DNA of 63,467 bases, counting the filler, from Pelomyxa schiedti (Eukaryota > Protista > Evosea), in NCBI GenBank assembly GCA_020536535.1. It is 6 parts of 6 records of this genome, joined end to end, with 100 filler letters (N's around TTAATTAATTAA, not from the genome) between each part and the next. Parts side by side here need not be neighbours in the genome. Positions count along the whole stretch, not along the records: positions 30,109 to 45,976 come from JAHLWZ010000415.1; 5 more parts are not named here. The stretch is one strand, 5' to 3'. The notes under the pieces are model-generated. The model was given only the letters and a program-made list of their open reading frames with translations, did no database searches and was not told the DNA's origin. The translations under genes were made by a program, and so were the position numbers. This document shows positions 30,109 to 45,976 of the stretch, piece after piece. Numbering within the stretch: position 1 is the first letter of the stretch; each line of letters starts with the position of its first letter.

Positions 30109-30491
30109 GATGTCTTGTCTCCAGATATCAATGGAGCCTTGGTTTTGAATACCTTGTTGGTTTGCCCAAGAGAATGTAGGGTAGTTGACTGGAGGCAAAA
30201 CTCAAAAATTGGTTGTGAGTGTGATGTTAGAAAGCAGGTCTTGCTCAGGATCAGGCAAGTCCTCACAAGGAGCAGAGAGGCCCCTCTGCAAAAAAGGTAC
30301 AGGTGTATGCAATAGCTTTTTTGCCTTTTTACCTCCCTATTGTTGTACTACACCGTTGTTTGTAACTGGGACTTTCCAGCCAGAACAAACACCCACTTGG
30401 GGTGACTGTTTTGCACATCCAGATATGAGGTTGTTCGGCACTGGCACAACACTCGAAGGCACCACACAGTGTTTTGGCTTTTTTTTGTTCG

Positions 30492-31063
30492 TTAATTGGT
30501 TGTGACTGTGAGCAAACCATAAATCTCAAATCCACCAACCATGAGGTAGTTGTTGCTACTTGAGTTGAGACCAGTGATCACCACACGAAACACACTGAAC
30601 GACGAGGTTGGAGTGGGTGGAGCAGCATCCCACGACCCAACTCCGTATTTTGCAACAATTGTCTGGTCATTTGCATGCCTCGTGATGGTTGTCCATGTTG
30701 TGCCGTCGTTTGATCCCCTCAGCTCCCAGTTCCGAATGTAGTCACTGCCGTTGTAGTCGTGCCTGATTGAGTACTTTGACGGCCTCACTGACCCGCCACA
30801 TGGTCTCAGGTCCACCTGCCACCAACTGTTCGCCTCATTGGCGGTGTAGCTGTAGCTATTGTAGTCACGTTCGAGTGCGTTCTGTGGTGCCCCTTCGTTG
30901 GCACAGGACCACGAGGCGATGACGAGGCCCGAGGTGTGGGGGTTGACATAATTGGGAGTGTGGTTGCCGGGGTTGTGCCTTGGATCGGGAGTGGTTCCCA
31001 ACCACCACATGGCACCTTGATGGTCCCAGTTGCTGCTGAACGTGAACTCGACCGTGGTGGGAC
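30492..31063 (-). CDS. Discoidin/galactose-binding-like (F5/8-type, HECTD1/BTB-associated) terminal exon, copy 1; upstream exons not visible
   Basis: CAG acceptor at 31064-31066, then ..FTFSSNWDHQGAMWWLGT..NSWWQVDL..RPSKYSIRH..IRNWELRGSNDGTTW..FRVVITG..YLMVGGFEIYG..TN*. About 95% identical to 44886-45457. Confidence 0.8.
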
Positions 31064-31143
31064 CTGTGGGCCAATTTTAGTTTGATGCACAATGCCACAA
31101 TGAACAAGCATCTCTTTGCAAAAAAAAAAAAAAAAAAAAAAAG

Positions 31144-31243
31144 NNNNNNNNNNNNNNNNNNNNNNNNNNNNNNNNNNNNNNNNNNNNNNNNNNNNNNNNN
31201 NNNNNNNNNNNNNNNNNNNNNNNNNNNNNNNNNNNNNNNNNNN
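31144..31243. other. Scaffold gap (100 N) inside an intronic poly-T tract
   Basis: Plain N run after a plus-strand poly-A tract. Confidence 0.9.
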
Positions 31244-33309
31244 ATTTCCCTAGAGTGCAAAGAGATCTGCTACGCCTCAGGCGCAAACACCTCGCAATGC
31301 TTCGTCCTGCCCCCCATCCCCTTGTTGTGTTTTGATTTCGTTTTAGTTAGTCAAAGTTGTGTGCCACAAACAAGAGCCATCATAGTCATATTAAAGCCAC
31401 TGTTTCTCGCAATGCTATTAAAAATACACAAATGGATTTATGGTGAGTAGGGCACTTACAGGCACTTAGAAAAAACATGCAAATGCAATGAAGAGAAATG
31501 ACGATACCTGTGATGCTGCGGATACCGTGGGAGATCTGGTTTATTCGGTTGTTGGCTTGGCATACGCCACCATGCAGTGCGGCTTTGTTTTTTTTCCTGT
31601 TATTAACGACGCCTAGCACTTGTTTCCCAGGCCCAATTTTTGGGAACGAATTTCCGTCCCACCAACTTGAGGATTTTGGAGACTGGAGTTTTTTCACACT
31701 TTCTCTCACTGAAACATGTTGTACCCCATGTAATTGTGGGGTAAGAACCACAGTGTAATCTCAGGGACAGAGTACAGACAGTCCAAAGAAGTGCACAAAA
31801 CAAACCTTTTCGGAAATTTTCGAAGTGATAGACCCGCGAGCGGCACCCGATCGCCTGCGTATCTTTCTTCATTTTACTACAACAACCACAACAACATGGG
31901 ATCTACCGGCCCGGATGGATTCCGAGTAAATGACACGGGCCTCGTATGGTGTGCCGCGTTGGTTGGTAGCCCTGGCTGGGACCCACCGGTGGGACAAGAA
32001 GGAACCCCCATTGGGGGGGCCGGGGGGTTGGTTGCTACGAGTGCCAAAAAGCACGCATAACAACCACCCGCTGTAAATACGCAGAACGCCGTTTGGGTGG
32101 TGAGCCGTTGCGTGTGGTTTTGCTTTGTAGAAAAGGGATGTAATGGGAAATGTATTTACCTGAGTTAAACTCAAACCTACACATGCGAGCAGTGACAACA
32201 AGAAGTGTTCCAAGTGGTATACACATACTCAATAATCTTTTGACATGTTTATCTAGATTCGTGGTCGTCCCTATCTTCCATTGATAAAATGCACATCAAA
32301 AGCTTGTCAGGAAATGCACACCCTGGATTACTTACTAGCCTCTCAGCTAACACAAAGGAAACCTTCTTCTTTTCGCCATCCATGGCAACAACATCCTCAG
32401 CACCTCCTGGTCTCACAATAACATAAACCCACATTCCATCCATGTAATAGACAAAAAGAAAGAACGAAGAAAAATTTGTACAAAAAAAAGTGCTTTGCTT
32501 TATTGAGAGTTCAAACAGCATGAACATTGTTGCCAAAGGCGGCCAAAGAGATACTGTCCTTTGCGATGCCAGAGCCAATTCGCAAGCCGGTAGACCAGTA
32601 AAGCAAAGCAAAGCAGAAGCCAAGCTGGGACGGGAATCCAGAACAGGATCAATTGGCAACACCAGAAGTGGGAGCAGGGGTTTGGCTAGAAAGACCCTCA
32701 ACCAGATGGCCAGACTGAAAATATGTTAGTGTAAGACGAAATGTAAGGAGAATGTGTTTACCGGGTACATAATCTGTGCTTGTTCTGATGGATCTCCGAT
32801 CCATTTAAAAGGCTTGGGCGTTGTCCGAGTAGGAGAAACAGGCGTCGTAGTGGTAGGTTCAATCGTCACAGGCCTCGTTCGAGGAGTACGGCGTATGAAA
32901 GGGACCGTACTTGTGTGGTTGTTGCTAACTGGGGCCTGGGTTTGTGGTGTGCCAACCGGTCGCGGAGCTGCGGTTGTTGATATCATCAACGTGGTTGAGG
33001 GTCTTTGTTGTTTGGGGACCGTGGCAGTTGTTGGAGGCGTCAGAAGTGACTTGGGCAGCACCACATTAGCACCTCTAATAGGAAGTGACTTTCTGGTGCT
33101 GGATCCTAAGGTACTAATTTTAAGGAGTGCCTCCCTAAGAGTTTCTGTTGGCACTACTTCGACTGGTCTTGGTCCCTAGAAGGTCAGAACAACTGGTGCG
33201 GTCAGTGTTGATGTCGATCCTGAGGCTGACGTTGATGGTGGAGGTGGAATTGGAGCCTGGGGGGGGGCTGTTGTTGCTCATCGGGATGATAGGGGAGTAA
33301 CGGTACTAG

Positions 33310-33720
33310 GAAGGCATTGATAACAGCGGCAGCCATGTGCCTAATGCAGTAGATACAAGACAAGGTAATTTGCACTGAGGCACCCAATGCCGCATGGATA
33401 TACAATGCTACAGTGGCAAAAAGCCAGGAAGGGATGGCGTGGATGACGGTGGTAGACAGTTTCCAGCTGCATGTAAAGCAAGAGCAGATCATGGGCAGTC
33501 TGGTACCCAATACCACACGGATATCCAACGCTACTGTATGTATACGAGAGCAGGTTGAGGGAATAAAGGATCGTGAAGCATTGATAACGGCGACAGCCAA
33601 ATGCCGAGTGCAGTGGAAGCAATAACATGTCCTTAGCACTGCAGCTTCCAAGTCGCACGAATATCCAATGCTACTGTACGCACACGAGAGCAGGCAGAGT
33701 AAATCAACAACGACAGCCCC
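33310..33720. repeat. Degenerate tandem repeat, about 125-135 bp period, 3+ units
   Basis: Recurring blocks gcattgataac(a/g)gcg(g/a)cagcc and (g/a)atat(a/c)caa(t/c)gctac(a/t)gt, about 125-135 nt apart. Confidence 0.55.
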
Positions 33721-34806
33721 AAGACAATAGATCGTCGTCGGCGGTACAGGTGCACCAGTCCCTGTGCCGTCTTGAACAAACATATGGCCAATAAGGCCAG
33801 CTAGTGGAACCGCACACAACGCAACATTGATAGAGCCAGGCGGCCAGTATCCCAGAAAACTTGGCTCGGGTCTTCGAACCAGGGTATTGTACGTGGAAGG
33901 CGCCATCCCCCGACGGCCACGCGGTAGCCATTTTGATCGTAGACACTCCAGTCATCAGAAAGCCATACGTGACGCAGAGCGTTTTCCAGGGCAGTCGAAC
34001 TCGACGTAAACAAACTCAAGACTGCCCTCCACTAGCAGTGTACAACAACCCAACAATACAAGCGTGCGAAAACCGCAATACGTGCTCGAGAAGAAATTAC
34101 CAGTCCTAGGTTAAAAGATACTTAGTTTGAGAACAGGTAATAGATTGATACACAGCCGAAAAAGAAAAAACGGACAAGCACAGGATGAGTGGACAACATA
34201 CCGCGACAGCATAAATGTTTGCGATTATTCCTGGGTGCCTTACCGGCCTCCCCCACAACGCGGTCGATGTAATTGAAACGCACAAACACCTGCGCATTGC
34301 GGTTAAGAAAGTTTGTTTGCCTGATGCTCGTATCTTTTCTACACACATCCCACCCCGACTCCTCGGTAATCATCACCCATAATAATCCGCTTCCCCACTA
34401 ACACCTTAGCATCTTGCCATGGCCGCAACACTCCACCTATTTGTGTGGTTACGCACCACGAAAAATATAGGTTTTTGTTTTTCCCCCCAAGGCGGCACCT
34501 TGGTCGAACATTTGATGAGGTTTAGAAGAGGAACAAGCCCAAAATTGACCCACAAGTACACTTTGGAGAGAGTTCTTCTTCAAATAGCGGAAATTTTAAG
34601 TTTTCTCGTTTGTGGTGCATAGTTGAAGTTGTTCATCGAAGGAGGAGGAAACTCTTCTGGAGAACAAGGGCCTTCTTGATTCAAGAAGAGCCCATGACCC
34701 CCTTTCAATTTATCCATCGAATTCTATGTTTGTGTTGTGTTGCTGAACCTCAACTCGACGCGTCCACCACCCCGTTCTTTTTTTTTTTGTAATTCCCCAT
34801 TTCGTT

Positions 34807-36865
34807 GTGAGCAAGCTGTATCCCATCAGTGACTTTGTCGATTTGCCTTGTGTTGGGGGTGGATCGTCGTCCCCACCAGGTGCTGGGAGGAAGGGTTGCT
34901 GTTGTTGTGGGGGATACAACTACGTCGAACAGCACGGGGAGGATGATGACGGTGGTGCGTCGATCAACAAGGGGAGGAGAGGGAGGATCGTGCATTTCGT
35001 GCACTTGATGGAGCTCAGCCTCGCCCTGTCTTTGGTGTTTTTGGCGTACAACGGTTCGTTTTTGAGTCGTTAAGCTTAGTCTAATGAATTATCGTTACTA
35101 TGAATTTTGCGCAGTGTGGGTGTTTTTTTTTCTTTTTCTATCCCCTCGAAGTAATTGGGTGTGTTGTGTAGGTACACAGGCTATAATGTCCAGTGTTATT
35201 TCGGGTAGTCTATCTTATTGGACATTGGCGACGATATACATATCACTGGGACTGAGTGCCATGTTTGCTTCGTCGGGGATTGTGAGCAAACTCACTCCAA
35301 AGTGGAGTATATGTGCTGGTGGTGTAGTCTATGCCGCATTCATATGTGCCAACTTGTACCCGAGGTATTACACACTTATTCCATGTGCCATTGTGCTTGG
35401 ATTTGGGGCTTCCATTTTGTGGGCAGGAGAAGGTGATTTAGTAACGACCCACTCTGCTGTGGAATTAATGGTTTCTCAGGTTCATATGTAGCCTATGCCT
35501 CTGGTGCTTACTCTGCAGCTGGAAATAATGCTCCACAGAGCTCCCTTGGACTGTTCAATGGCATCTTTTTTTCAACCTTCCAGGTTTTTCTCCAAACGTG
35601 GATGCTGTTGGTTTCAACACTTATTTGCAGGGGTCTACAGTAATTGGTTATCTTATTTCATCACTCGTTTTGGGGTCTGAGCCAAGTACAGATGTATTTG
35701 GGGGTTCAACATTAAGTAAGATTCCTCTTTTGAACTTGGTATCAGTAACACTCTTGCAGTACTGTTCATTGTGTATGCTGCTATTTGCATTGGAGGTCTT
35801 GCAGGGTTGCTTATCCTGCCACAAGAATATTCACTTGCTGCACCAGTAGCAGTGGAACCTCGACCCCCGACTCACAACAAAATACTTGAAGTGGTGAAGC
35901 ACCATACACTTGAAACTCTTATGCTGAACCGTGATAGGCGCATGGCTCTTCTGATTCCAATGATGTTGTATGATGGGCTACAGAGAGGTAATTCTCGCAT
36001 TCCTTGTATTAAACGCTGACTTGGACGTACTTCTACAGGGTTTACCTTTGGCGATTTTACCGCAAGTGTAATCAAGCCGAATCTCGGAGTTGATATGGTC
36101 GGCTATGTTCTTGCAGTGTATGGTATTTCTTGACCTGTCTTTTTTTATATTTCTTACGTTATCCACAGCTGCTGTAAATGCTGTTTGCTGTGGTGTATTT
36201 GGTTTGTAGATACTTTCTTTCCTACCTACTAAGTCTATATCCAGGTAAAATCGGTGATTTGATTGGCCTTCGAATAATACTTTCCGTTGGTATTGTACTG
36301 CAGGGACTTGTGTTCATATTTAACGTTTGTTGGTGTGAGGTAACTCTTTTCTTCTCACTAATGGAACTATCTATTCTAATATCACCAACAACACACATAG
36401 CTATTTGGCATTACAACTCTTGGAGATTCCAACTGGGGAATTGCTGTGGTCTGGATTTCTTCAGTAATGCTGGGAATCGGCGATGCCTTCATTTACACTG
36501 TGTTCTCCAACACAATAATTGGAACGTTCCCCTGCAAGCCCACGGCGTTCTCCAACTTCAAATTGTGGGTGAGCCTCGGCTACACTGTTGCCTTTGTGTG
36601 GGGTCCCTACATTGGGATAGAACTCAAGAGCGTTCTAATTGCTGCCTTGCTTGTTGTGGCTGCCTATTTCGTTTTCATTCTGGACAGAATGGTACAACCT
36701 ATCAATATCCCCAAATCAGGAGCACCCAAGCCACCACAACAAGAAAGCAAAGGAAAGAATGACAATGGTGGTGGGGATGACAATGATACTGATGATACAA
36801 ACACCACTGAGATTGACCCTTCAAAAAACCAATTGTTGATGGAGAAAGTTGGAAAGAGAACCTGA
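34807..36865 (+). CDS. UNC-93-like MFS transporter
   Basis: HLMELSLALSLVFLAYN/GTQAIMSS..LATIYISLGLS..IVSKLTPKWSICAGGVVYAAFICANLYPRYYTLIPCAIVLGFGASILWAGEG; later MLGIGDAF..FSNFKLWVSLGYTVAF. Start uncertain. Confidence 0.85.
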
Positions 36866-36949
36866 ACCCTCTTCACAATGAGCAAATCTCTTATTAGGTT
36901 TGTTTGACTTGTTATTTACAGAGTTTTTTTTAGCCTTAGGGTGCGTGCT

Positions 36950-39900
36950 CTATGATATCTTTTGGAATGTGAGTTCAAGAAATAGTTCCACTTGGGGAAT
37001 ACATGACATACCATTAATTGCTGTGACAATTGCTGGAAAGTCCGGTCTTTCATCAGGATTATTTGCCCAACATGCTGTCATTAGGTCAGTCAGACCAGGA
37101 GGCATTTCTGTTGGAATGGCCGGCCGTCCTCCACCAATCACGTGATGAAACAAGCCTGAAAATTGGTGAAAAGATTAACCCAGTGCATTGGGTGGGTGAT
37201 ACCGAATGTGCTTTCTATCTCCAGGAAAGGTGTTGTGTTTGTTGCAATGCTCCAGATTAACAGAGCAAATGAATAAACGTCTGCTTTTGTGGAGTATGTC
37301 TTGGCATCGAGAATTTCTGGTGCAGTGTCTGGGCCACTTAGAACTTCAAATAAATTTTTTTGGTCATACAGGAAGGGGTCCCAACACCAACGGTATATGT
37401 TCCTTTCTCTTTGTTCTCTGTAGTGACTCGAGCGGAACCAAAATCACCTAATAGAAAAAGAGAAGTTGTGACTCTGTGGGAAGAAAAAAAATGCCGTACT
37501 TAGTTTAATGTGGTGGGCAGCCTTTTTTGCAAGAGACGACACCAGGACCTTCAATTCAATTCAGGAAAGAACAAGATGAGAATAAAGCTTCATACATTCG
37601 CTGGCTGAGTTGAGGGGAAACAAATGTACAAAGTAAATAAAATGCTGGTGATATGTGGGAGAGGTTACTTTCAAATCACGATGAATCACACGATTACAGT
37701 GTAGGAAAGTAACTCCCTGTGCAATTTCTTTTATGAACCGTAACTAGTAAATGTAAATAAACAGGTTTTTTGTTAAAAAGAAGTACCTTCAACCACCAGT
37801 TAATGGTGTGCTTCTCCAAAATTCCCTCTAAACTGCCAAGCTCAACAAATTCCTAGGAGAGTGTTGGCGAGATTCAGGGAACATACCCAAATTCCACAAT
37901 AATTTTTACCATAACAATAAAACATCCTGTTGGTGACATTGATGAACCGTAGAATGTTCTGATTGGTTTGAGTACTGCACCGGGTTTGGGGTGTAGCTTA
38001 CACAACATTGGGCGACTTTAGGAGCACACACAAGTCTATTTCTCGTTCTATCATCTCTCGGAAAGCATTATCTTCATACATGTAAACAGGAAATGTCTGA
38101 TAAAATAAGTTTGTGGAGAAAAGAGGAAGGTACGACTTTAAGGGCAACATCAAGACCCCTCCAAGTAGCACGAAAAACACTTCCTGAAGAAATGAAGTAA
38201 GTCTGACATATTGATTATCATATTTTCGTACCTGCTGCACCTTGCCCTATTTTTGCCCCTAGACATGGCTCAGTTTTAACGACGGAATGAAGACCTCACA
38301 AACCAACTTGTATTTCATCAATATCCAACCGGGAAGATAGCTGTACTGCCGCCACCAAGGGCAGAACCACCTGATATGGGCAGTCTAGAATTGGGAATTT
38401 ATTAGTCACCATAACAATAGCCTTATGTCTGACTTGTTATTGACAAAGGTATTTCAAGGTTAATATCAGCTGTGCACTTTGCCCTGATTGAAAACACAAC
38501 TTTTACAGTTTCTCCCTACAGAGATGTGAAAACTTCATTCAACGTGAGTAGAACTCCATACCACACCAATTACAACGTGCAATGGTGATATAGAGAGAAT
38601 AAACTTATGGGATGCAGCAGGGAGTTTCATTGTTAATGTCACACTTTCATGAACTGTATTTGTAATATTGAGGACTTCCTCGCATCCAGCTTCCACTTGA
38701 AGGGGTTTGAGGTTCGTTCCGAAAGTAATGGATGTGACAGAGAAGTTCAAAGGCAAAGTATTATCGTTGCAGACCAGCTTCCTGAATAGAAGTGAGTCAA
38801 CAATCAACCGATAGGTATTTACCTCAAGCTTGCGGCATCTCCAACAGGTTCAAGTTGAAGGTGGGGTCTGGGCTTTGTTCGGCGCTTCACGATAAGTGCG
38901 GCAGCAACAGTACCAACAACGACCAGAGCACAAAAGCACACAACGATGAGGGGGATATACCAGTCCTTTGCGGAAACTGAAGAGAAGAGTAAGTTATGCA
39001 TGAAAATTAAATTCACTGTTTGCCAACCTTTGCATGACTTTGATGGTGGTGAAGTGGGCACATATCCAGTCTCACAGACACAGTTAGATGAGCACCTGTG
39101 ACCTCCATCGCATTCCTCCTTTTGATCAACAACTCCGTCTCCACAAGCTTGAGTGTAAGGGAGTAACCCCGTGAGTGGAAGTAATCAAAGGAGGGATTGG
39201 ACAACCTAGCATGCACCCCACATCTCCATCTGGCTTGTACAAAGCACTGCAAGTGCAATCGATGCAGTGTTCGAGTGCATCACAGTTCTCACCAAAGTCA
39301 ATGTCCACCACTCCATCTCCACAGGCTTCGTGTGACAGTCAGCTAAAGGTTTGAGTTTGAAGTTGGGCCAAAATACCCAAGGCTTTATCCCGCCTGAAAA
39401 AGGCACAGGTTGGAAAGATAAATGGTGCCAATATCCGAGAGCAATTCGGCGGTAACTTTTACTGGGTGAGCAGGAGGCAACTACTAAATACCGTGGGAAA
39501 TACTTGGGACAGAGGGTAGGGCAAAACAGTGATCTGTGTAAAGTAAATCAGAAGGAACAACGTTCGAAAGTGTTTGGTAGGAAGAATCGTTTGAAGCAAA
39601 TACCATAAATGGGTCAGAGAAGAGCTCATCAATAGCTTCTTCAGAAGTGGTGAAATCTATGATGGTGGCCCAAGTACCAAACATAGTTGCCATTATCTCA
39701 CAATTTGCTTCTCCAGTAGCTCCAACCTGCTTTATTCTTAAGATGATGTTCTCGTCTAAACTTTAACTGGGGAGCGACCTTGTAACCCGCATTTTCACTG
39801 AGAAACTGAGTAATTTCCTGCAGTGATTCCAATGGGCTCGACATCAGAGTGTATAAATACAGCGGAATGGCACTTGTATAGCATGACGAAGCGAACTCTT

Positions 39901-41900
39901 GTGTGCTTGGTTCCTCCGCAGAGTATCTTGCACTCAGCAGGAAAGCAGACGTTGCTTTTGTATTTAAAAAAAAAACATTTGATGCTCGACTTAAAGCAAC
40001 TGGACATACTGTCAATTGATCCTGATCTTAAAGCATCAAAAACTTCATCCTCTGTATCAAAAATTGTGTATTTGGCCATGATGGGTTCGGTTGTGATGAA
40101 CATATGAGAGAGGCTGTGCCAATGTTAGTGGGGGAAACAGATCGAGCCAGTACTAGGTTGCAACTGCTCGTTCTATATCTGGTATAGCACCAGTTGGAAT
40201 TGCTGCCTCTGTGTCCAGCAAAGGCCTGGCATTTACTCTGGGGGCCCCGATTCGGAGCTGGTTTGAATTTATAATATTCTGCAGTGTTCCCTCTATTTTC
40301 AATAAGACAAAAAGCAGAGCAAGTTACAAGAACCAGGGTAAGGTGTGACAAACGCTCCAGGTTTTGCAACACAGTCCTTTTTAAGTGATGGAGCGGTTAA
40401 AAAACGGCCTATTTGTCAAGAGTCTTACCCCGGTGCTGAGTACAGTAAGGTTATAGCTGTTGAAGATTTCGTCTTGCTTTTGGGTATTAACAATCCACAG
40501 AATAGAAGCATCATAAGCTTCCAAGAGTCCAGAATTACCAGTGTCATACACTGAAGTGTCATTGAGGGAACTCACCTGTTGTTTTGTTAAGTCCCACTGA
40601 GAGGTTTTTTTTTCTGACTTTTTCTTCCTCGGGTGTTTCCAATCTGAAAAAAGAAACCCGTGGGAGGATGTAGTTGAGGGGAATCCATTTGAATTCCTCC
40701 GATTGGCTCTGAGAATATATGATCGATTGTTTTGATCAAAATCTGGCAAGTCTGATGAAGCAAAGGAACAAACATGATTTGAAACTGCAATAGCGAGCAG
40801 GGCCGAATCTGTTCTCAGAGCTTCAAATGCCTCTTCATCATTCTCAAATAGAATTGTTACCTTCAGGCACATAAATCAGAGACGAAGGCTTCCCAACAGT
40901 TCAAGAAATACAAAACTGCATCCATGAAGAGCTCTTGAATGGCTTGGAAAAGGACTTGGGAAACGGCACCCACTTTTGTTTGTGTGTACCGATTCATTGT
41001 CTCAATCGAGTGGTAGAGCTCAGCTTGACTTTCAAGGTAATTTGAGGCCATGTACAGTTTTTGTCCAAAGGTGGTGCAAGATGCTCTGTATATAAGAGAA
41101 GCACGGTTGGTGCCACTTTGAGAAAATGTGCCTGTGGAAATTCAAACCCTTAGAATTGCACAGACCCCAAAACTGGGAACCTGCTCCATAGTCACAAGTT
41201 GTTGCTGTGATAATATGGTTAAAAAGAGTAAGAACGGGAGAGTAGTAGGTATACCAGATATCAGACCGTTTTCTAAGGCATCAAACACCTCATCAAGGGT
41301 GTCAAAATTCAGCCTTTTTATTTTAGTGTGAAATGGAGATGGGGTAGGGGTGGATCACATGTAGGTGACATTTATTGGCCGTCCTATGTAGAACATTCCA
41401 ATTCTTCACGAAACACCAATATCAGAATCGCATGGTAAAGGGGGAAAAAAGGGGAAAAAGGGGGGAAAAAAAATTGTGAGGAGTTTGTAACCAAACCTGC
41501 TGTAAATTTCCCTCTCCAAGGAGGGAGCAGGACCAACAGGACTTTCAACAGTATAGTCCCCGTAACCATAGCTCAAATTCCCACGTGCTCCAAGAACGAC
41601 CACCTCGTTCTCCAGGATTGCCTCCAAAACCCCCACGGGCTCGTCAGGAAACACGAAAGCATCGGTCACAGGGGCGCACTCATAAAACGTGATGCTGTCG
41701 GCCAAATTGTACGGCGCCATCATGGAGTCGTAGGATCCATCGGCGTATATCGACGCCAATGCGGAGTCGAACGCGCGGGCCAATTGTTCGTCGCCGGTCT
41801 CGGCACACTGTATCACAAGATCCAGATCCAAAAAGAACAATGATACCGAGAGAAGCGAAACGAACGAGCGTATAAAAACCGGAACTGCGACACGTGACAT
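36950..41900 (-). CDS. Transmembrane receptor kinase (Entamoeba TMK-like, TKL) with tandem type-2 periplasmic-binding-protein-like ectodomains
   Basis: Signal peptide MSRVAVPVFIRSFVSLLSVSLFF; repeated ectodomain units; Cys-rich linker; TM WYIPLIVVCFCALVVVGTVAAALIVKRR; TMK-like juxtamembrane domain ITFG..EEVLNITN..ISPLHV; kinase LKSPNVV, EFVELGSL, IAQGVTFLHCNRVIHRDLK, GVGTP, RPAIP..CWANNPDERPDF. Confidence 0.82.
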
Positions 41901-42122
41901 TGCACCAAACCCACCAACAACTACCAAAGGTTACACAACTCAAAAACGATCTCCAGATCGTGTGGTGTTTCTTCGGTTTATTTTCTGCTAAACGGGAAAG
42001 ATGAAGAAGAGTACGGAAAAAGATGCAGAAAAGGGGGAGAAGAAAAGAAGAAAATCTCCCCCAAACACAACTTCCACACGACGTCCAGGGTACGTAGCGG
42101 GAAAAAAAAACTCCAAGTTTTC

Positions 42123-42890
42123 TTAAGGTTGGGTGTGGTGATTGTGAGGGTGCCATACACCTCGAACCCAGAGATATGGAGGGAGTACCCCTCCGAGCTC
42201 GGCCCAGTCACAACCAGGCGTAACACGCTGAACGGCGACGCCGCGGCCGACGCCTGCGGCACGTCCCACGTGCCCACGGCCCGCAGGCGCGTCCAGCGTC
42301 TGTGGTCGTTCTTGTGCGTGGCCAGCGTCGCCCACGCCGCGCCGTCGCTGGACCCGTCGCAGCTCCCACGTCCGGAGCGCCGCCGCGCGGCCGTGCTGCG
42401 TGTGCCTGACCGAGTACTTGGTGGGCCGCACCGAGCCGCCGCAGGGCCGCAGGTCGACCTGCCACCAGCTGCTGTTGTTGGGGCCGCGGTCGTTGGTGCA
42501 GTTGGCGCTGTTGCAGTCGCGGTCGAGCGGTGGGGTTGACGTAGTTGGGCGTGTGGGAGTCGGGGCTGTGGGCTGGGTCGGGGGTGGTCCCAAGCCACCA
42601 CATGATCCCATTGTGATCCCAGCTGTTGATGTATGTGAACGTACGCGTGACAACTGTGTTTTTTTTTTTTTTTGTTTTTTTGGGATTGTCAACAGTCAAA
42701 GAGCAGTCAAGCACACATTACACATTTGAGAGTGAGAGGAATAGGGATAGGCATACCGATTGGAGTTGAGAGAGTGGAGATTGGGGACCTCCCTCCGTGC
42801 ATTCCGTTTGACTCTGCCCTCACGCTCAGCATGTATGTGGTTCCCATTGACAGGCCTCCAACTGTGATCCTGGGGTCACTTCCACAGTGG
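42123..42890 (-). pseudogene. Diverged third FN3 + discoidin-like paralogue with frameshifts
   Basis: CGSDPRITVGGLSMGTTYMLSVRAESNG (FN3 3' half), intron, then WDHNGIMWWLGTTPDP..NYVNP. A deletion of about 60 bp with frameshift precedes SSWWQVDLRPCGGSVRPTKYSVRH; a second frameshift precedes GSSDGAAW..GFEVYG. Confidence 0.8.
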
Positions 42891-42896
42891 AAATTG

Positions 42897-43095
42897 GTCC
42901 TCGATAGAAGGAGGATGGAAAAACCACTCTTCGATAGCAGGAGGAGTTGCTCCTCGATAGAAGGAGGAGGTAGGAGAAGTAAACTGGTCCTCGATAGAAG
43001 GAGGATAGGAAACCACTCTTCGACAGAAGGAGGAGTTGCTCCTCGGTAGAAGGAGGAGGTAGGAGAAGTAAACTGCTCCTCGATAGGAGGAGAGG
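42897..43095. repeat. Minisatellite, about 89-90 bp unit x2.2, built from a ctcgatagaaggagg subunit
   Basis: tcctcgatagaaggaggat..aaaccactcttcga..ggagttgctcctcg..gtaggagaagtaaactg occurs twice. Confidence 0.85.
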
Positions 43096-43639
43096 GACAT
43101 TGAGGACCCAGCACATGGAAATCACAGCAAAGGGACCAAGGATGAGGACGAGGAGGCAAGCACACAGGAACAGACTGTGGACCAGAACAATAGAGCAGTG
43201 AGCAAGGGAAGAGTTGGAGCAGGGCACTCCCATGCAGCATCAAGGCTGAGCAGAATTGAGGAGCAGGTCATAGCCCGAGAGACAGCCCCTTCTGAGGACT
43301 CTGTTGCCAACAATCAACTGAGAGCAAGAGCGGTAATTACAGGCAATCCCACTCTGGAGGGTGAGGGAGGGCAACATTGGGAGAGACGGAAAAGGAAGCT
43401 AGTAACTGAAAGGAGGGCAGCCCAAAATTCCCAACCCACGTGCAGCACTGGAGGAGAGACATAATTCTGGCTGGCGTGAGACCCCACTAATTTAGAATGT
43501 GGGAGAGCAGGAGCCGGCTCAGACCAGGAAGCACCCATGACATACAGACACTTGTCGATTCGATCTCATGCCAATCTGCACCGCAATCATATTTTGCACT
43601 AATTCACGTACGCCTATCCACGCCAATCTGTGCTGACTG

Positions 43640-44500
43640 CACCGGCAATGACCTGTCAGCCCCACTCCCTCTGGTTTGCTTTGATTGTCCTGACCGCGAT
43701 AGTCTACTCCTGTCCACTCGGTTTCACTGCGGCTCACCCTGGTTCACCCAGATCCACTGCGTTTCACCCCAGTTCACCCCGTTTTGCTCTGCTCAATCTG
43801 ATCCACCCTGAACCGACCTGGTTCAGTTCTGGTTTTCCCCAGTGGCTCACCCACCCATCCCAGTTTGTTGTGTTCCACCGGCTCACCCTGTTTCGCTCCA
43901 CTTAGCTTCATTCCATCCCGACCATCCAGAAGGAGACGGTATACACTGACAATCAACACCAACCTGACGGAATACAGCAGACCAACGCTGTTTACTCTAT
44001 TCTACTCCGGCTTCACTCCGTTCCGCTTCGTTTTACTCCATCCCACTCCACTCTGCTCCGCTTCGCTCCGTTTTCCCCCGTTTTGCTTCGCCTTACTCAG
44101 CTGTACATCGCTTTACTCTATTCTGCCCCGTTTACTTTGCCTTCTCCAATTCACTACAATTGCTGCGATTTACTCCGAACTACCTGAACTATCCCACACC
44201 AACCCAACTATATCAGGCTATGCACATACACCCGCGCAAGCACAGTCCACCCCACGTTTGCGTTCAGAGAGGGAGTGGGCTGATGGGTCTCATGAAGGAA
44301 CAGAGCAGAGAGAGAAGGCTAGTCAAGTGGGAGGGGATGGGAGATAGAATTTCCGGCAGCATCCTTGAGGATTACTGTGCAAGAACCTCGTCAACCGAAT
44401 CACTGAGTACCACATTGTCACTCCAGTTTATTACGATTACTCCAGTTCAGCTCGATACTCTCCGATTACCCCGGCTTACTCTAACTTACTCGGTTTACCT
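43640..44500. repeat. Degenerate pyrimidine-rich pentamer satellite (YYYRC-like periodicity)
   Basis: For example ttcac-tccgt-tccgc-ttcgt-tttac-tccat-cccac-tccac-tctgc-tccgc-ttcgc around 44010-44070. Confidence 0.65.
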
Positions 44501-44885
44501 GGATGCACTCTGAGCCATCCAGAGAGGGAGGAGCCACGCAACCCAAATGCAGGACCTGCAGGACCCCCTTGATACCCAGAGAGCGTTTAAGAGAAGGAGG
44601 GAATGTGTGGTGTCCCACCCAACCCAGTGACCAATCACAGTCAAGGTCACCCCAACCTGGAACTGTACTCAGGCCTCTGATCTCCCATCACACACACAAT
44701 AGCGCTCATTAGCTCACAAACTTCTGCTTATTGGCCGAGGTTCATGAGTACTCGACCAAAATCCACCCCTGAATTGCAAACCGTACGGAACCGGCACAAC
44801 ACTCGAAGGTTTACACAGTATTTTCGCTTTTTTTGTTCGAAGGCACCACATAACTTTTACACAGTGTTTTGGCTTGTTTTGTTCA

Positions 44886-45976
44886 TTAATTGGTTGTGAC
44901 TGTGAGCAAACCATAAATCTCGAATCCACCAACCATGAGGTAGTTCTGGTTACTTGAGTTGAGACCAGTCATCACCACACGAAACACACTGAACGACGAG
45001 GTTGGAGTGGGTGGAGCAGCATCCCACGACCCAACTCCGAATTGTGCAACGATTGTCTTGTCATTTGCATGCCTCGTGATGGTTGTCCATGTTGTGCCGT
45101 CGTTTGATCCCCTCAGCTCCCAGTTCCGAATGCAGTGACCGCCGTTGACGTCGTGCCTGATTGAGTACTTTGACGGCCTCACTGACCCGCCACATGGTCT
45201 CAGGTCCACCTGCCACCAACTGTTCGCCACGTTGGTGGTGTTGTTGCTGCCGTTGTGGTCACGTTCGAGTGCGTTCTGTGGTGCCCCTTCGTTGGCACAG
45301 GACCACGAGGCGATGACGAGGCCCGAGTCGTGGGGGTTGACATAGTTGGGAGTGTGGTTGCCGGGGTTGTGCCTTGGATCGGGAGTGGTTCCCAACCACC
45401 ACATGGCACCTTGATGGTCCCAGTTGCTGCTGAACGTGAACTCGACCGTGGTGGTATCTGTGGGCCAATTTTAGTTTGATGACAATGCCACAATGAAGCA
45501 AGCATCTCATTGCAAAAAAAAAAAAAAAAAAAGTTGATGAGCGATGAATAACAAACAACAGTCACACATAATACATACAACACACTCACTATATGGGGTT
45601 GAGAGCGCCTTGAAGGGGGAGTTCCTTCCATGGATTCCATTTGACTCTGCCCTCACACTCACCATGTATGTGGTTCCCTTCGTCAGCCCACCAACTGTGA
45701 TCCTGGGGTCACTCCCACATTGGTGTTGTTGTGGTTCTTCTTCTTGTTGGTTGTTGTTGTTGTTGTTGCGTTGTTCTTCCTGCTGTTGTTGCCTGGACAC
45801 AAACACTGTGTATCCTGTCACTCTGTTTCTTGTTGCTTTTGTTGGTGGTGGTGGAGGAGGAGGAGGGTCCCATGAGAGAGTGAGGGATGTTGGGCTCGCT
45901 TGGCATATCTTAGGTTGCCCTGGTGCACCGATTGCTTCTTCTGTCGGCATTATGTCAGTGTTTGTTTGGTGGAATG
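44886..45976 (-). CDS. FN3 + discoidin-like domain protein, copy 2 (5' end lost at the contig edge)
   Basis: FN3 PGQPKICQASPTSLTLSWDP..VTGYTV..(Q/N-rich loop)..ITVGGLTKGTTYMVSVRAESNG. Donor gtgagt, intron, then terminal exon 45457-44886. Confidence 0.85.

Follow-up and report, generated by a model that had tools for sequence, protein, structure and literature searches.

How did two nearly identical exons of an amoeba come to concentrate their differences in a few short patches? The exons lie on the minus strand of scaffold JAHLWZ010000415.1 of Pelomyxa schiedti (assembly GCA_020536535.1), whose 15,868 bp form one whole piece of the window, the 63,467-nucleotide stretch of joined DNA analysed here; the exon product of copy 2 is 100% identical to the hypothetical protein Pelo_5074. 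The initial annotation had proposed a variable-recognition receptor family with a discoidin-like domain, diversified by adenine-directed mutagenesis of the diversity-generating retroelement (DGR) type, by patchwork gene conversion or by strong positive selection. DGRs are described from prokaryotes and phages. Our results support the recognition family, and we consider it likely that it is a germline multigene family in which point mutations in surface loops were fixed by diversifying selection, with some exchange between paralogues. Positive selection and patchwork exchange both fit the data, but adenine-directed mutagenesis is not supported.

Copies 1 (30492..31063) and 2 (44886..45457) formed an ungapped alignment of 572 nt with 29 differences, as first reported. 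Twenty-two of these fell inside the four patches noted at the outset (10, 5, 4 and 3), against a chance expectation of 3.6 (binomial p=7e-15). The four patches were picked post hoc, yet all of them turned up again in four further copies. A recount again gave 24 non-synonymous differences, of which one lies in the split first codon, and 5 synonymous ones. The segments had been called 572-bp terminal exons; they do belong to the last exon, but the 572 nt are only its coding part, up to the stop codon. As noted before, four of the five synonymous differences were of the CpG/TpG kind. At these CpG-context sites (30528, 30657, 30837 and 30858), copy 1 carried TpG and copy 2 CpG in all four cases, and most other copies also carried CpG at three of the four, which suggests a CpG decay particular to copy 1.

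Searches with blastn and tblastn located the terminal exon 11 times on five assembly scaffolds and also revealed additional gene bodies there. The comparison covered the piece itself and scaffolds L001, L003, L004 and L005, about 58 kb in total of a 52-Mb genome; copies 1, 2 and 3 of the window are W1, W2 and W3, and L-numbers denote copies on the other scaffolds. Six copies were close, with nucleotide identity of 93% or more (W1, W2, L5a, L5b, L3a and L3b), and five were divergent at ~70-75% identity (W3, L3c (P0009), L4a (P0011), L4b and L1 (P0002)). Each close copy entered its own unique 3' flank 28-59 nt past the stop codon without a gap, indicating that the close copies are distinct loci. 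Pelomyxa paralogues carry the annotation HECTD1 or HECT-domain protein. Sequencing runs were compared as Logan contigs, which drop rare variants. RNA contigs showed at least two letter combinations that are absent from the assembly, which therefore underrepresents the family and lacks at least two of its close paralogues or alleles. On 45258-45457, RNA contigs from runs X2 and X4 combined copy 2-like or copy 1-like letters with the codon-16 and codon-36 states of other copies, and one variant RNA contig continued across the splice joint into an L5a/L3a-type FN3 exon end.

Among the six close copies, 61 of 531 sites varied, in 44 of 177 codons, and nearly all variable sites lay within five patches. 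The four patches first noted were all real; the fifth, P0 (codons 51-56; 45285..45302, in copy 1 30891-30908), had been hidden since copies 1 and 2 agree there, and it varies in the others. All patches are on the minus strand, and each fell in a loop of the predicted structure described below. P1 (codons 63-75; 45228..45266, in copy 1 30834-30872) forms the loop between H59-63 and E80-84, and P2 (codons 102-107; 45132..45149, in copy 1 30738-30755) the hairpin loop between E90-100 and E112-117. P3 (codons 129-138; 45039..45068, in copy 1 30645-30674) lies between E124-129 and E141-145, and P4 (codons 161-175; 44928..44972, in copy 1 30534-30578) between E157-162 and E177-186.

The discoidin-like assignment was borne out by profile and structure comparisons. 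Copy 1 matched F5_F8_type_C at 35.1 bits (cut-off 28.2) and F5_F8_type_C_2 at 36 bits (cut-off 27.8), and copy 2 matched F5_F8_type_C at 29 bits (cut-off 28.2). An AlphaFold model of the domain reached a predicted local distance difference test (pLDDT) value of 96.3, and Foldseek matched it to CBM32, fucolectin, APC10 and the galactose oxidase N-domain at probability 1.0. The nearest predicted structures were BTBD9-type BTB/BACK–F5/8C proteins from eukaryotes (ESM Atlas, template modelling (TM) score 0.79-0.88). An exhaustive HMMER search, which collapses close paralogues, returned 2967 relatives, many with repeated domains. In the model, invariant loops intervene between P1-P4 as the antiparallel strands succeed one another, so that P1-P4 share one end of the sandwich, the one away from the C-terminus; this grouping is argued from strand order. 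Loops at that end build the ligand site of CBM32 and discoidin domains. The model therefore suggests that the variable loops may form one ligand-binding-type surface. Candidate ligands are glycans or the surfaces of intracellular microbes or viruses. Pelomyxa lives with several intracellular prokaryotes.

Full-length relatives show what the domain is attached to. In P0152 (672 aa), P0154 (666 aa) and P0011 (703 aa), the order was a RING-like Cys pattern, two B-boxes, a long helix, FN3 and the discoidin domain. The zf-B_box profile matched two stretches of P0152 (E=4e-13, 49.7 bits, cut-off 24.1) and was also found in P0154 and P0011, and fn3 matched the full-length protein at E=1e-9 (Pfam). 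The RING profiles zf-C3HC4, zf-C3HC4_4 and zf-RING_UBOX matched P0152 residues 17-49 at 18-21 bits, below their cut-offs. For the N-terminal 375 residues, a low-confidence AlphaFold model (3 input sequences, pLDDT 47), used only for the long helix, placed helical segments at 185-307 and 313-336 (pLDDT 58-79). The N-terminus gave no sign of a signal sequence. Judged from these sequence features, the layout is TRIM-like, and the proteins are presumably cytosolic E3 ubiquitin ligases.

The rates of change point to selection on the loops. In Nei-Gojobori means over the six close copies, the proportions of non-synonymous (pN) and synonymous (pS) differences were 0.19 and 0.12 in the patches, and 0.005 and 0.027 in the remaining scaffold of the domain. 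The upstream exons and intron of close paralogues differed at ~1-3 positions per 60 nt, in agreement with the pS of the domain scaffold. Amino-acid change in the loops was thus ~7-fold above neutral divergence, an excess that relaxed constraint cannot explain. We propose that recent duplication and/or homogenisation would have left close members ~2-3% apart at neutral sites, that ordinary point mutations in the five loops would have been fixed by diversifying selection on binding specificity, and that exchange between paralogues would have mixed the loop variants.

Several points weigh against this explanation. There are only six close copies, and the rates are Nei-Gojobori means over these. 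The pairwise homoplasy index (PHI) test for recombination was not significant (p=0.15), so recurrent mutation may account for much of the site incompatibility; probably, exchange and recurrent change each play a part. The comparison used DNA and RNA contigs rather than raw reads, so rare within-locus variants may escape it. The DNA came from seven micromanipulated cells, was amplified by multiple displacement amplification (MDA) and was pooled in the assembly; the assembler was SPAdes in its single-cell mode, with a k of 121 at most, and scaffolding relied on RNA read pairs through P_RNA_scaffolder (PMC8887013); some of the "copies" could be alleles or strain variants. Purely synonymous variants were mildly enriched beside hypervariable codons (6/11 vs 30/144, p=0.014), and third positions varied 6 times more often in patches than in the domain scaffold (12/50 vs 5/127, p=2e-4). 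Neither is predicted by uniform mutation plus selection. These patterns fit short-tract conversion or local mutagenesis, leaving a small probability for a targeted process.

Gene conversion is the alternative that survives best, although we regard it as unlikely to be the main generator of the loop variants. Under this explanation, loop-sized segments would be copied in short tracts among paralogues, divergent ones included, while concerted evolution would keep the domain scaffold uniform and selection would retain loop diversity. The nearest relative of copy 2 did shift along the domain, from L3b at P0 and P1 to L5a at P2, L5b at P3 and copy 1 at P4b. A global run-length permutation test on identity gave p=0.001, 252 of 528 informative site pairs were incompatible with a single tree, and some loop states were shared with divergent paralogues. 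The clustering of synonymous variants next to hypervariable codons, and homology that stops 28-59 nt past the stop codon with unrelated 3' flanks beyond, would also be expected from conversion. Against this stand the PHI result, the modest p=0.04 of the best single-pair Sawyer-type run, and the many synonymous differences of the divergent copies in the domain scaffold, which were not co-imported with the loop states. Mosaics could also be imitated by mis-phasing or MDA chimeras, though the k of 121 exceeds the identical tracts of 69-109 nt between patches, making mis-phasing by the assembler unlikely and leaving MDA chimeras possible.

It is improbable, in our estimate, that a dedicated mutational mechanism other than a DGR, which could be short-tract templated conversion or locally targeted error-prone repair, is focused on the five loop tracts. 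Hypermutation directed specifically at the tracts that encode the loops, whether in the germline or between the nuclei of the cell, for example by error-prone repair or deaminase-like targeting, likewise has only a slim chance of being correct. It would account for the third-position variability of the patches, for their pS of 0.12 beside 0.027 in the domain scaffold, and for homoplasy that is independent of distance, since PHI was not significant yet 48% of site pairs were incompatible. The substitution spectrum, however, showed neither base nor strand bias, and the patch limits were drawn from the variation itself, which inflates the patch pS. Moreover, patches 2-4 of copy 2 had an exact match in RNA contigs of single cells from another sample, the loops of copy 2 were the same in DNA contigs, and the variant DNA contigs on the copy 2 patches were the assembled copy L3b rather than new variants. 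To our knowledge, no mechanism of targeted loop hypermutation is known in Amoebozoa.

An assembly artefact would mean that the "copies" are alleles or strain variants of the seven pooled, MDA-amplified cells, or chimeric contigs, put on one scaffold in error, and we give it little credence. The RNA-pair scaffolding speaks for it. Three of the six close copies (W1, L5b and L3b) abut 100-N gaps, and homologous coordinates overlap across the gaps at L003 14510-14609, on the scaffold of L3b, and at L005 1753-1852, which is mid-gene; this indicates that the L003 and L005 joins mix paralogues. The scaffolder appears, from these coordinates, to have chained pieces of different paralogues, and may thereby have produced chimeric gene models, for example Pelo_2659 (P0154). 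On the other side, every copy runs gap-free into its own unique 3' flank, P0152 and both L004 genes are full-length without gaps, with the L004 pair in tandem, and RNA contigs match the copy 2 loops exactly. The artefact bears on linkage and copy number, not on the loop-restricted variation. Further 100-N gaps were seen at L003 1394-1493 and at L005 591-690 and 3445-3544, and each such gap on these scaffolds falls within or beside a family member. We also considered W1, L5b and L3b as alternative 3' exons or donor cassettes behind full genes; this was rejected, as all three abut gaps made by the RNA scaffolder.

In the window, the same problem affects copy 1 (Pelo_5067). Its last-exon coding part is intact, and is followed upstream by the 3' part of its intron (31064..31143, minus strand; acceptor and poly-T), which aligns with the copy 2 intron. 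Copy 1 lies on a 1,035-bp block (30109-31143) that ends within the intron poly-T run, where the scaffolder placed a 100-N gap (31144..31243). From 31244 onward, comparison with L001, L003-L005 and the rest of the piece found nothing like the intron, the FN3 exon or another gene part, and Pfam searches of open reading frames (ORFs) past the gap and in the copy 3 region gave zero matches. The annotated Pelo_5067 model is a short unrelated ORF spliced onto the copy 1 exon. Without family homology past the gap, continuity and reading frame across it are unsupported, and on this sequence evidence the linkage of copy 1 with copy 2 is unproven.

The adenine signature, finally, was explained by the composition of the loops. 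Of the 29 differences between copies 1 and 2, 19 involve A, as first counted; the A belongs to copy 1 in 10 cases and to copy 2 in 9, which leaves no template polarity between them. Loop codon positions 1-2 are 44% A, and 62% A-involvement would be expected from loop composition against the 19/24 observed (p=0.065), which upholds the earlier caveat that AAC-rich loops inflate this figure. Consensus-A loop sites were variable in 15/41 cases and non-A sites in 19/53 (odds ratio 1.03, p=1.0), and at 22 of the 61 variable sites (36%) none of the six copies carried A. Conversely, 121 As were invariant, 32 in patches and 89 in the domain scaffold, 22 of the latter at third positions. In every ordered pair of copies, the putative template had A at no more than 47% of mismatches; the invariant A-consensus copy that had been sought as a template was thus not among them. 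Searching the piece and the four other loci with the exon by blastn revealed no template repeat beyond the exon copies themselves, and no reverse transcriptase was present among the called genes of the five scaffolds or the scanned ORFs of the piece, in keeping with the earlier remark that neither was visible. The A-rich differences follow from loop codons rich in Asn, Ser, Tyr, Asp and Thr, and the A/G excess is consistent with swaps between codons for Asn, Ser, Asp, Gly and Thr. Although the variable codons are mostly NNC and variation occupies the 3' end of the gene, as would be expected if error-prone reverse transcription copied an A-rich template into the exons, the five patches spread over ~375 nt with A-containing invariant tracts between them, and a DGR-like mechanism was rejected on its defining feature, with virtually no probability left to it. 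This would-be first eukaryotic DGR is thereby removed from the list, and the locus serves as a worked example of how Asn/Ser/Tyr-rich loop codons imitate an adenine signature.

The gene structure of copy 2 (Pelo_5074) was resolved by RNA contigs, which show that it is transcribed and spliced. Its last-exon coding part, encoding the BTBD9/CBM32-like discoidin domain, ends with the stop codon at 44886-44888 (minus strand, as are all parts of this gene). The 3' untranslated region extends at least over 44808..44885, as seen in record 9 of the X2 RNA contigs, which spans 44808-45228 with 0 differences from copy 2. Upstream lies a 132-nt GT-AG intron with a poly-T tract (45458..45589), whose ends read CT..AC on the plus strand; a spliced RNA contig, which comes from other cells, joins 45457 to 45590. 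The FN3 exon beyond it (45590..45976; Pfam fn3 E=9e-9) is cut by the scaffold end and is 76% identical to P0152 residues 366-667 (tblastn). In the 3' flank of copy 2, contig depth over 44527-44792 was 3-4 times that of the neighbours, and many contigs branched off at 44657, 44701 and 44770; the segment looks like a dispersed repeat.

Similarity searches found a third, divergent and GC-rich exon copy in the window (42134..42700, minus strand, 59% GC). Copy 3 is ~17 codons shorter, with P0 among those lost, and reads in three frames; judging from its sequence, it is a probable pseudogene or carries assembly errors. A DNA contig from X3 lacks 1 nt at 42357, exactly at one of the frame breaks, which may therefore be an assembly error or a polymorphism. 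The C-terminal half of its FN3 exon was recognised by tblastn at 42764..42889 (minus strand), where direct repeat D2 is 82% identical to 45594-45723. The region upstream of copy 3 (42764-43092, minus strand) comprises this half exon and two copies of an 89-nt tandem repeat (83 nt matched); no B-box or coiled-coil part was found there. Two other genes lie between the exon copies: a 1,109-aa protein-kinase gene (36936-41900, minus strand) and a 466-aa UNC-93/major facilitator superfamily transporter gene (35008-36865, plus strand). Elsewhere, a leucine-rich-repeat kinase gene (1,129 aa) sits between two family members in the L004 cluster, and a 527-aa NHL-repeat gene (L003 1863-3723) annotated as "tripartite motif-containing protein 2/3" adjoins the family cluster.

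Comparison with known systems would place the family in a known kind, the diversifying multigene recognition family, here with a discoidin recognition fold on a TRIM-like module in an amoebozoan. The closest parallel is offered by finTRIM/TRIM5-type genes, in which duplication was accompanied by positive selection on hypervariable loops of the C-terminal domain (PMC2657112). Both join a ligase module of RING–B-box–coiled-coil kind, putative in Pelomyxa, to a recognition domain at the C-terminus, and both have numerous recent paralogues, some of them in tandem, and a near-identical domain scaffold with amino-acid changes in a few surface loops. They differ in the recognition domain, which is B30.2/PRY-SPRY there and a BTBD9/CBM32-like discoidin domain behind FN3 in this anaerobic amoebozoan; for the Pelomyxa family, function and positive selection are putative. 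BTBD9, HECTD1 and the plant and parabasalid BTB-BACK proteins share the same F5/8 type C subfamily and its attachment to ubiquitin-ligase modules, predicted ones in Pelomyxa, but most of them are conserved, occur in single copy and carry BTB/BACK or HECT partner domains, whereas the Pelomyxa genes have a TRIM-like module and hypervariable loops.

CBM32, discoidin and fucolectin domains have the same beta-sandwich (Foldseek probability 1.0, TM by target up to 0.76), and their ligand-site end is where the Pelomyxa variable patches map by topology; identity is only 10-24%, and those proteins are mostly secreted bacterial or extracellular. With DGRs, exemplified by Mtd of Bordetella phage BPP-1, the family shares the restriction of variation to a C-terminal ligand-binding part, predicted as such in Pelomyxa, and Asn/Ser/Tyr-rich NNC codons. 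In contrast to DGRs, it is eukaryotic, lacks adenine specificity, showed neither template repeat nor reverse transcriptase on the five scaffolds, uses a discoidin rather than a C-type lectin fold, and spreads its variation over many germline loci, whereas a DGR rewrites one.

Should a dedicated mechanism prove true, Pelomyxa would be a single-celled eukaryote with a self-diversifying intracellular recognition repertoire. If instead the loops diversified by point mutation and selection across a germline family, the explanation we favour, Pelomyxa would hold an enlarged set of TRIM-like ligases whose lectin-type recognition domain is hypervariable. The family would then be a protist counterpart of the vertebrate antiviral TRIM families, arrived at convergently through a different recognition fold.

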